A stretch of 63,484 nt of DNA, filler included, from Dicyema japonicum (lineage: Eukaryota; Animalia; Dicyemida): NCBI GenBank assembly GCA_011109175.1. It is 7 parts of 7 records of this genome, joined end to end, with 100 filler letters (N's around TTAATTAATTAA, not from the genome) between each part and the next. Parts side by side here need not be neighbours in the genome. Positions count along the whole stretch, not along the records: positions 1 to 30,880 come from RDEW01000009.1; 6 more parts are not named here. One strand, 5' to 3'. How positions within the stretch are numbered: the first letter of the stretch is position 1; every line of letters begins with the position of its first letter. The position numbers were made by a program, and so were the translations under genes. Shown one piece after another: positions 29,165 to 29,478 of this stretch. The notes beneath the pieces are model-generated. The model was not told the DNA's origin, ran no database searches, and saw only the letters and a list, made by a program, of their open reading frames with translations.

Positions 29165-29478
29165 TTATTAACCCCGGATACACCGAGAAAGAAGTTAAAG
29201 AAAACAACTAATTAAGTGTATCCAGTTTCCACTTCTACAGAAACAGAGTCCATCCGGAATTAGCATAAAGGGTAAAACGTCCATGACATGCAGTTGTGGA
29301 AACCCCTCCAGTGGAGTGGGGAAGAGCAAATGATCCTTTTTCATGCCGGCCTGGCACTGGGCGTCACCTAGACAGGTGGATCACATGTCGCCACTCTAAT
29401 AGGAAGAGAGAGGAGGAACATACAAGCATGCAGAAAAATTAAACCAATTAACCACGCAGCACCACATGGCGCCACGCG
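29165..29478 (-). mobile_element. Short non-autonomous retroelement with pseudoknot core, copy 1
   Basis: Aligns over ~290 nt with 50592-50885; 3' ~60 nt match the LINE 3' end at 59905-59975; ends in a TAAA-rich tail. Confidence 0.75.

Follow-up and report, generated by a model that had tools for sequence, protein, structure and literature searches.

The window, i.e. the whole stretch of 63,484 nucleotides (filler included) joined from seven parts of the Dicyema japonicum genome, harbours on its minus strand a retroelement of the young subfamily A1 of family A (Table 1). The 63-nt core of this element (window 29330-29392, minus; nt 89-151 of about 320 nt) was found base for base, and with the segmentation, given in a preliminary description of this DNA. 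The A-A mismatch noted there in P1 is likewise present: the A in GGCGAC is private to the window copy, nearly all others having a T. Alignment of 30 genomic copies with their flanks yielded a 320-nt family A consensus and revealed a sharp 5' end ((TTT)GCCGCGTGGCGCC; the window copy begins with ACCGCG vs GCCGCG), TAAA/TAA repeats after the 3' end, target-site duplications that range from about 8 to 60 bp and, in several copies, additional bases at the 5' junction. Defined ends, an A/T-rich tail, target-site duplications, high copy number and the absence of coding capacity are the properties of a SINE or of a bipartite LINE derivative, and bear out the short retroelement family surmised earlier.

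Table 1. Features of the family A retroelement and its structured core, in window coordinates
Feature	Position	Strand	Remark
Family A retroelement, young subfamily A1, ~320 nt	29161-29480	minus	97% identity to the 320-nt consensus
Element 5' terminus	29457-29480	minus	homologous to LINE 5' terminus; partial module duplicate (leader, P1 strand, AT, P2 strand start)
Leader ATTAGAGT, immediately 5' of G1	29393-29400	minus	conserved with LINE leader TTAGCGT
P1 5' strand GGCGAC	29387-29392	minus	family consensus GGCGTC
P2 5' strand GTGATCC	29378-29384	minus	five family versions, each complementary to its own 3' strand
P3 hairpin ACC / loop TGTCTA / GGT	29366-29377	minus	
P1 3' strand GACGCC	29360-29365	minus	variants pair with GGCGTC
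P4 hairpin TGCC-AGGCC-GGCA	29344-29356	minus	at least six stem sequences across families, all hairpins
J4/2 TGAAAAA	29337-29343	minus	older state CGAAAAA
P2 3' strand GGATCAT	29330-29336	minus	
Post-core stretch common to family B and LINE 5' UTR	29318-29329	minus	cross-family similarity
3' end GGTGTATCCGGGGTTAATAAATAA and (TAAA)n-type tail	29151-29184	minus	from the 30-copy alignment

The family is far larger than the three copies from which it was originally described. A search of the whole assembly (67,542,437 bases, 377 sequences; published as 67.5 Mb in 377 scaffolds with a GC content of 36.7% and 49% repeats, PMC6736024) with a 231-nt query around the core returned 1670 candidate places, the 40 scored among them displaying 94-100% identity. 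Two further queries of the same assembly returned 731 (family B) and 831 candidate places, and exact patterns matched 253 and 373 times in the genome vs 0 for the reversed control. The copy number of family A is well over 1000 in the 67.5-Mb genome, and contigs from sequencing runs confirmed both the very high copy number and the private mutations of the window copy. Among the family A copies, one (L029:1436-1500 / ~L029:1845-1905) displays an apparent target-site duplication of ~60 bp (TAGTTAGGGTCAGTGTTAAGGG…), which is unusually long.

Further repeats are located near the element and elsewhere in the window. Upstream in SINE orientation, window positions 29537-30211 represent an adjoining high-copy repeat, the contig depth of which exceeds that of the unique flanks by a factor of hundreds. 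Another repeat of ~310 nt occurs at window positions 1761-2077 (-), 14537-14752 (-) and 2-53 (+) and, at L031:1168-1474, also adjoins a family B copy; its tRNA-like T-arm (GGGTTCGATTCTCG) is on the opposite strand, and it is probably a separate tRNA-derived SINE. The unique flank 28794-29054 was also present, with 1 difference in 261 bases and at a depth of 2, in a sequencing run from 2015 labelled as a different organism (run X5, organism B), which could reflect host tissue or a mixed sample with the same parasite.

The core and its surroundings constitute a module that forms the body of at least five families of short elements. It is common to families A1, A2, A3, B and B2 and to older copies with an upstream tRNA-like segment, and pattern searches revealed two further short-element families, G and H, together with no fewer than three LINE-type versions; these later family consensuses rest on strings matched in the pattern searches. 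Similarity across families extends over consensus nt 88-163, i.e. from 1 base before G1 to 12 nt past P2'. The leader is preserved as well, TAGAGT or a near variant preceding GGCGTC in about 98 of the 100 family A matches listed. Subfamily A1, which holds the window copy, possesses P1' GACGCC and J4/2 TGAAAAA, the older A2 possesses GGCGCC and CGAAAAA, and a C is present in J4/2 of about two thirds of the 100 listed among the 253 exact matches to a 30-mer across J4/2. That TGAA is one C-to-T change away from CGAA thus holds for this lineage, with CGAA as the older (A2) and TGAA as the derived (A1) state. J4/2 in other families reads CTAAAAA, CCAAAAA, TTCCAAAAA, TTCGAAAAA or TCAAGA. Family B agrees with family A in its 5' end and core, has P2 TGGATCC/GGATCCA, and continues into an unrelated 3' half and tail.

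The second and third cores of the preliminary description lie outside the piece analysed here, but their kinds do occur in the genome: the one with GGCGCC and CGAAAAA is the older subfamily of the same element, and the one with TGGATCC/GGATCCA belongs to another family, which differs in its 3' tail. In the older, diverged copies a T-arm-like (GGGTTCGATCCCC) and a D-arm-like segment are located upstream of the core; neither ARAGORN nor Rfam recognised a tRNA in these heads. Two individual copies deviate in their architecture. A family B-like copy (L071:1287-1344, -) has lost the entire stretch from one P2 strand to the other (…GGATCCATTTTAAAAGGATCC…), and in a family A copy (C101:406140-406173) the 5' terminus TTGCCGCGT is joined straight to GGCGTCATGTGATCC, so that the module is terminal as in LINEs, possibly an ancestral or a deletion form.

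A covariance model was built of the nested part of the fold (P2, P3 and P4) and 114 copies were aligned, with P1 added as a pseudoknot for counting; the alignment was fitted to P2, P3 and P4, not to P1. Such a covariation test on collected copies had been proposed from the outset, and its outcome supports the fold: 91% of the cells are paired vs 35-47% with the 3' partners slid, and the covariation score is 0.216 vs 0.134 in shuffles, 0 of 500 of which reached 0.216, most cells being copies rather than independent events. Changes on both sides were found for 7 of 7 pairs in P2, 3 of 5 in P4 and 2 of 6 in P1 among the same 114 copies. Because copies predominate over independent events in this alignment, and because copies within one subfamily are 93-97% alike, which renders invariance there uninformative, the states at the level of families carry more weight.

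Five family-level versions of P2 were identified: GTGATCC/GGATCAT (A), TGGATCC/GGATCCA (B), GTGGCTC/GAGCCAT (LINE-1 and LINE-3), GTGGTTC/GAACCA (LINE-2 and G) and GTGGTTC/GGACCA (H, with a U-G pair). The compensatory change in P2 inferred in the preliminary description is therefore much stronger than could be seen from three cores. The P4 stem occurs as TGCC/GGCA, ATGCT/AGCAT, ATATAG/CTATAT, ATATAAT/ATTATAT, TTCCA/TGGAA and CATTTC/GAAATG; a fifth pair is likely, as G-U in the window copy and as G-C or A-U in other families. The P3 register ACC/GGT assigned originally applies to some families only, its outer A-U pair being A-A in B, LINE-1 and LINE-2, and the pairs common to all are two C-G pairs and a covarying inner pair (U-A, G-U or A-U by family). 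The first and last bases of the P3 loop are pairable in every family; the loop measures 6-7 nt in short elements as well as in LINE-3, and 15 nt in LINE-1 and LINE-2. In P1, GGCGTC is opposite GGCGCC, GACGCC, GGCGCT or GGCGTC and, with wobbles allowed, can pair with each of them, while LINE-3 (more than 40 copies) has GGTGTC opposite GTCACC, with C-G changed to U-A at pair 3 and a U-U mismatch at pair 5. Across families, pair 3 occurs as C-G, U-A (more than 40 copies) and U-G, and both mutations of the compensated pair are CpG transitions. P1 is the weakest of the helices, its evidence consisting of conservation, wobble-compatible one-sided changes and this single family-level compensated pair.

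All four helices are kept with different sequences in families at 66-75% identity and in three LINE families. Their order, P1-P2-P3-P1'-P4-P2', is that read from the window core and is maintained by compensatory change; it describes a nested double pseudoknot with P1 crossing P2 and with P3 and P4 as hairpins. The G-U pairs of the family consensuses are present on the minus (module sense) strand only and correspond to A-C mismatches on the other strand, from which it follows that the sense RNA is the folded molecule, in the functional orientation assigned before. Family-level compensations and the strand bias of G-U pairs together support the HDV-like crossing topology. As judged from these comparisons, pairing in P2, P3 and P4 is established, whereas P1, and with P1 the crossing topology, is probable; the compensatory substitutions between family consensuses show the helices to have been kept in master copies by selection. 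Nested MFE folding gave ordinary energies (z -1.6 to +0.6) and returned now the P1 fold, now the P2 fold, the behaviour to be expected of crossing helices. Pairing of the leader with sequence beyond P2' in an outer helix was considered and rejected, as it is not conserved between families.

At least three LINE families, encoding a 2A-like peptide, an AP endonuclease and a reverse transcriptase, also carry the module, at a distance of 6-7 nt from their 5' end. This is the known place of HDV-like ribozymes and adds support from beyond the view of the preliminary description. In one LINE copy (L059:1783-1859), the N-terminus of an AP-type endonuclease begins within ~100 nt of a diverged core, and pieces of a reverse transcriptase come after it, past an internal deletion; a search with this region returned 64 matches, and at least 30 copies all start 6-15 nt before G1. 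A second type (L084:2048-2135) comprises the core and an ORF with CGDVENNPGP (2A-type) at its start, an N-terminus resembling Exo_endo_phos (E 0.037, which does not reach the Pfam cut-off) and an unambiguous reverse transcriptase domain (RVT_1, E 2.4e-21). The flanks of 16 LINE copies are unrelated up to (T)TAGCGT and alike from there onward, so that the LINE starts 6-7 nt before G1. In L084:2136-2552 (+), the 2A-type ribosome-skipping motif (…LLCGDVENNPGPW…) is situated directly 5' of the endonuclease N-terminus, the same 2A-then-endonuclease arrangement as in L1Tc/Ingi and some metazoan non-LTR elements.

Both LINE copies align at their 5' ends with the core and its leader as well as with the 5' terminus of families A and B, and in these parts the short elements are homologous to an autonomous LINE from their own genome; the aligned 5' end of families A and B (GCCGCGTGGCGCCATGTGGTGC) has GCGTGG-CG-Y-C-ATGTGG in common with the LINE terminus. 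Owing to this homology, families A and B look less like pol III-headed SINEs than like LINE derivatives in which part of the 5' end is duplicated. SINE bodies may derive from LINE 5' parts (PMC5786205), and a body derived from a LINE 5' end, as suggested by the alignments, matches this published idea. In another LINE copy (C18:71769-71803), its own 5' terminus is tandemly duplicated (CGCGTGGCGTCAT then TAAGCGTGGCGTCATGTGG), an event of the type by which families A and B could have acquired their duplicated 5' terminus. The LINE fragments within the window (5953-7825, -, and 24084-26332, +) are of no help here: they belong to a different LINE whose reverse transcriptase is 29% identical to that of the L084 type; they are decayed, oppositely oriented and share near-identical protein stretches (e.g. 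VPKW.LKELRRAKVELEGAIMVYKRKLYTHESRCKRR).

Topology and place raise the question of self-cleavage, for which the individual ribozyme features yield a divided picture. The module might be a working ribozyme with a non-canonical HDV-like core that frees LINE RNA from read-through and was inherited by the short elements in active, attenuated or regulated form; we regard this as possible but rather unlikely. Besides the covarying HDV-like topology and a LINE 5' location as in R2, RTE, LOA and L1Tc (PMC5786205, PMC3185411), it would account for the G1-U wobble in the LINE-1 and LINE-2 consensuses (GGCGTC with GGCGCT), for the U at position -1 in LINE-1, LINE-3, A, B and one H-type copy, among the families with leader read, and for the GG in J1/4 of family G, as in HDV. 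All LINE versions, as well as A2, B, G and H, possess a C in J4/2, which precedes GAA, TAA or CAA and then a run of A. L1TcRz is active with a non-canonical core comprising a one-pair P1.1 and without P2 (PMC3185411). An alternative P1 formed by the leader (AGCGT with GCGCT) could, in LINE-1 and LINE-2, shift cleavage to the genuine start of the element; it is no more than a lead, as LINE-3 and the short elements do not have it.

A canonical active site, however, is not supported. J1/4 is CA, AG or GG by family, and the matching L3 dinucleotide present in most families differs in position, so that P1.1 is inconsistent in both position and sequence; in LINE-3 (L3 AGAAAC, J1/4 CA) it is impossible. 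J4/2 is 2-3 nt longer than in HDV-like ribozymes and its C is 5-7 nt before P2' instead of 4. In A2 this C is able instead to form the fifth P4 pair, and in A1, the window copy included, the candidate catalytic position is occupied by U. Against a working ribozyme also speak the P3 loops of the short elements, given here as 4-6 nt, the pairing of G1 with C in A, B, G, H and LINE-3, and the U-U mismatch in the P1 of LINE-3. In older tRNA-headed copies the leader ends in A at -1.

The positional evidence points the same way. A 5'-end location as in elements with HDV-like ribozymes, invoked in the preliminary description, does not apply to the short elements, in which G1 lies 65-90 nt inside, and even in LINEs a conserved leader of 6-7 nt precedes G1. 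Of the first 100 listed among the 373 exact family A matches, 0 start at G1 or adjoin foreign sequence there; this count by pattern repeated an earlier one, in which none of the fetched copies, a sample biased towards full-length copies, began at G1. Inheritance of the leader, and of 65-90 nt upstream of G1, indicates that the RNAs that were copied had not been cut at G1. Moreover, a ribozyme within a SINE would behead it (PMC5786205). Rfam matched no family in the whole piece at gathering score and no ribozyme model, HDV included, at E<=10 in the SINE copy and two LINE copies, which is weak negative evidence, as the models do not encode pseudoknots and the ribozyme family has little sequence conservation; a literature search for the literal sequence strings gave no match. 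The C/D-box snoRNA-like matches at 29560-29625 are weak, below gathering score and not significant, and fall outside the element. Membership in the HDV-like ribozymes is thus not shown by the features compared, and self-cleavage by a non-canonical HDV-like core, even if confined to the LINE context, is at most a tentative proposition.

In our preferred reading, the core is probably a decayed copy of a cis RNA module of HDV-like topology from a LINE 5' end, captured by short elements and kept as a fold for a role other than cutting. The module would have originated at the 5' end of a LINE group and been captured as the body of several abundant short non-autonomous retroelements, the heads of which would be a tRNA-like segment in some and a duplicate of the LINE 5' terminus in others. 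As everything upstream of G1 was propagated intact and the youngest subfamily, which is also the most successful, has no candidate catalytic C, we infer that cutting is not what the fold, a nested double pseudoknot with P1 crossing P2 and the P3 and P4 hairpins inside, is kept for. It may instead be needed in cis, even when internal, for mobilisation of the short elements by the LINE machinery or for RNA fate, e.g. in 5'-end recognition, RNP assembly, translation or stability. Catalysis, if any, would be limited to some LINE versions and absent or harmless in short elements. The pair of readings offered in the preliminary description, a silenced ribozyme fold or a new structured cis element, remains right.

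The first member of that pair may be extended to a new non-canonical branch of HDV-like ribozymes, active at dicyemid LINE 5' ends and silenced, with the fold kept, inside thousands of short elements. Such a branch would do without a standard P1.1 and have an extended A-rich J4/2 and a short inherited leader; catalysis would have been lost by loop shortening, G-C at the base of P1 and the change of C to U, and the fold kept for a second, non-catalytic job. On the features compared above, we consider it doubtful.

Conservation at the level of DNA, e.g. of a promoter inside the 5' end of LINEs that the short elements have taken over, with helices that have no role as RNA, is very improbable. In line with it, families A and B begin with a duplicate of the first ~25 nt of LINEs, away from the rest of the fold, and Pr77 of L1Tc is both promoter and ribozyme (PMC3383444). 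A DNA motif, however, does not predict five complementary versions of P2, at least six of P4 and G-U pairs on one strand only, and a promoter function, though compatible with the fold, is no substitute for it. Chance complementarity, i.e. meaningless inverted repeats in a young repeat, would suit the likeness of copies within a subfamily and the ordinary MFE z-scores but is scarcely conceivable in view of four helices kept across diverged families and three LINE families, the poor pairing of the slid controls and the family-level compensations that contradict it.

Several implications follow from the individual readings. The genome paper (PMC6736024), according to which there is also a mixed-stage transcriptome, contains no description of SINE families of D. 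japonicum, and for this dicyemid host genome with its 49% repeats the elements described here provide a first anatomy of main repeat families. If the fold has a non-cutting job, this would bear on the general conservation of LINE 5' pseudoknots. If the versions form a graded set of active and silenced HDV-like ribozymes, the known sequence space of this class would be widened, and if the reading as a silenced branch is true, one 67.5-Mb genome would contain a natural series of forms with an active ribozyme at one end and a structural relic at the other.

Among known systems, the HDV-like ribozymes at the 5' ends of LINEs (R2, R1, R4, RTE, LOA/Baggins and Ingi/L1Tc) have the same helix order and the same place as the Dicyema module. 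They are also alike in the short P3, the variable P4 and P2 and the J4/2 C followed by As, and two of the LINE families here have the G-U at the first P1 position. In contrast to these ribozymes, the module possesses no recognisable P1.1, a longer J4/2 and an inherited leader before G1, finds no match in Rfam, and has a 6-pair P1, the basal pair of which is G-C in most families. Pr77/L1TcRz of the L1Tc-ingi group (NARTc, RIME, SIDER) likewise represents a 5' module in an autonomous LINE and in abundant short derivatives. A 2A peptide is known from Ingi and L1Tc (PMC3708506), and in these elements as in the Dicyema LINE the ORF begins with a 2A-type peptide followed by the AP endonuclease, so that the succession of 5' module, 2A, endonuclease and reverse transcriptase recalls L1Tc/Ingi by analogy. 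Pr77, however, is the very 5' end of every element, with cleavage at +1, whereas the Dicyema module is internal in short elements and preceded by a leader in LINEs, and no sequence similarity was seen between the two. Flatworms, too, provide cases of an RNA motif travelling with non-LTR elements in a spiralian parasite (hammerhead in the Schistosoma Sm-alpha SINE; 5' twister variants in Perere-3, PMC8501958); these ribozymes have a different fold, and the target-site duplication of Perere-3 abuts the cleavage site, unlike in the Dicyema module.

Bipartite non-autonomous LINEs (R2 SIDEs and derivatives of RTE and Ingi/Vingi; PMC5786205) are also composed of LINE 5' and 3' parts, some with a tRNA head, and construction from LINE parts explains the origin of the otherwise enigmatic SINE 'core'. 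A 5' ribozyme was expected to be excluded from SINE bodies, which it would truncate (Kojima 2018, PMC5786205). The Dicyema case runs against this exclusion of ribozyme-bearing LINE 5' ends from the making of SINE bodies, since a ribozyme-shaped part is here the conserved body, with its pairing maintained. The central domains of SINEs (CORE, V, Deu, Ceph, Nin and Meta), compared here by description only, are likewise central segments common to families differing in head and tail, and are an old puzzle; while these domains have no established structure or origin, the Dicyema core can be traced to an origin and has a fold that compensatory change has preserved, which renders its function testable.
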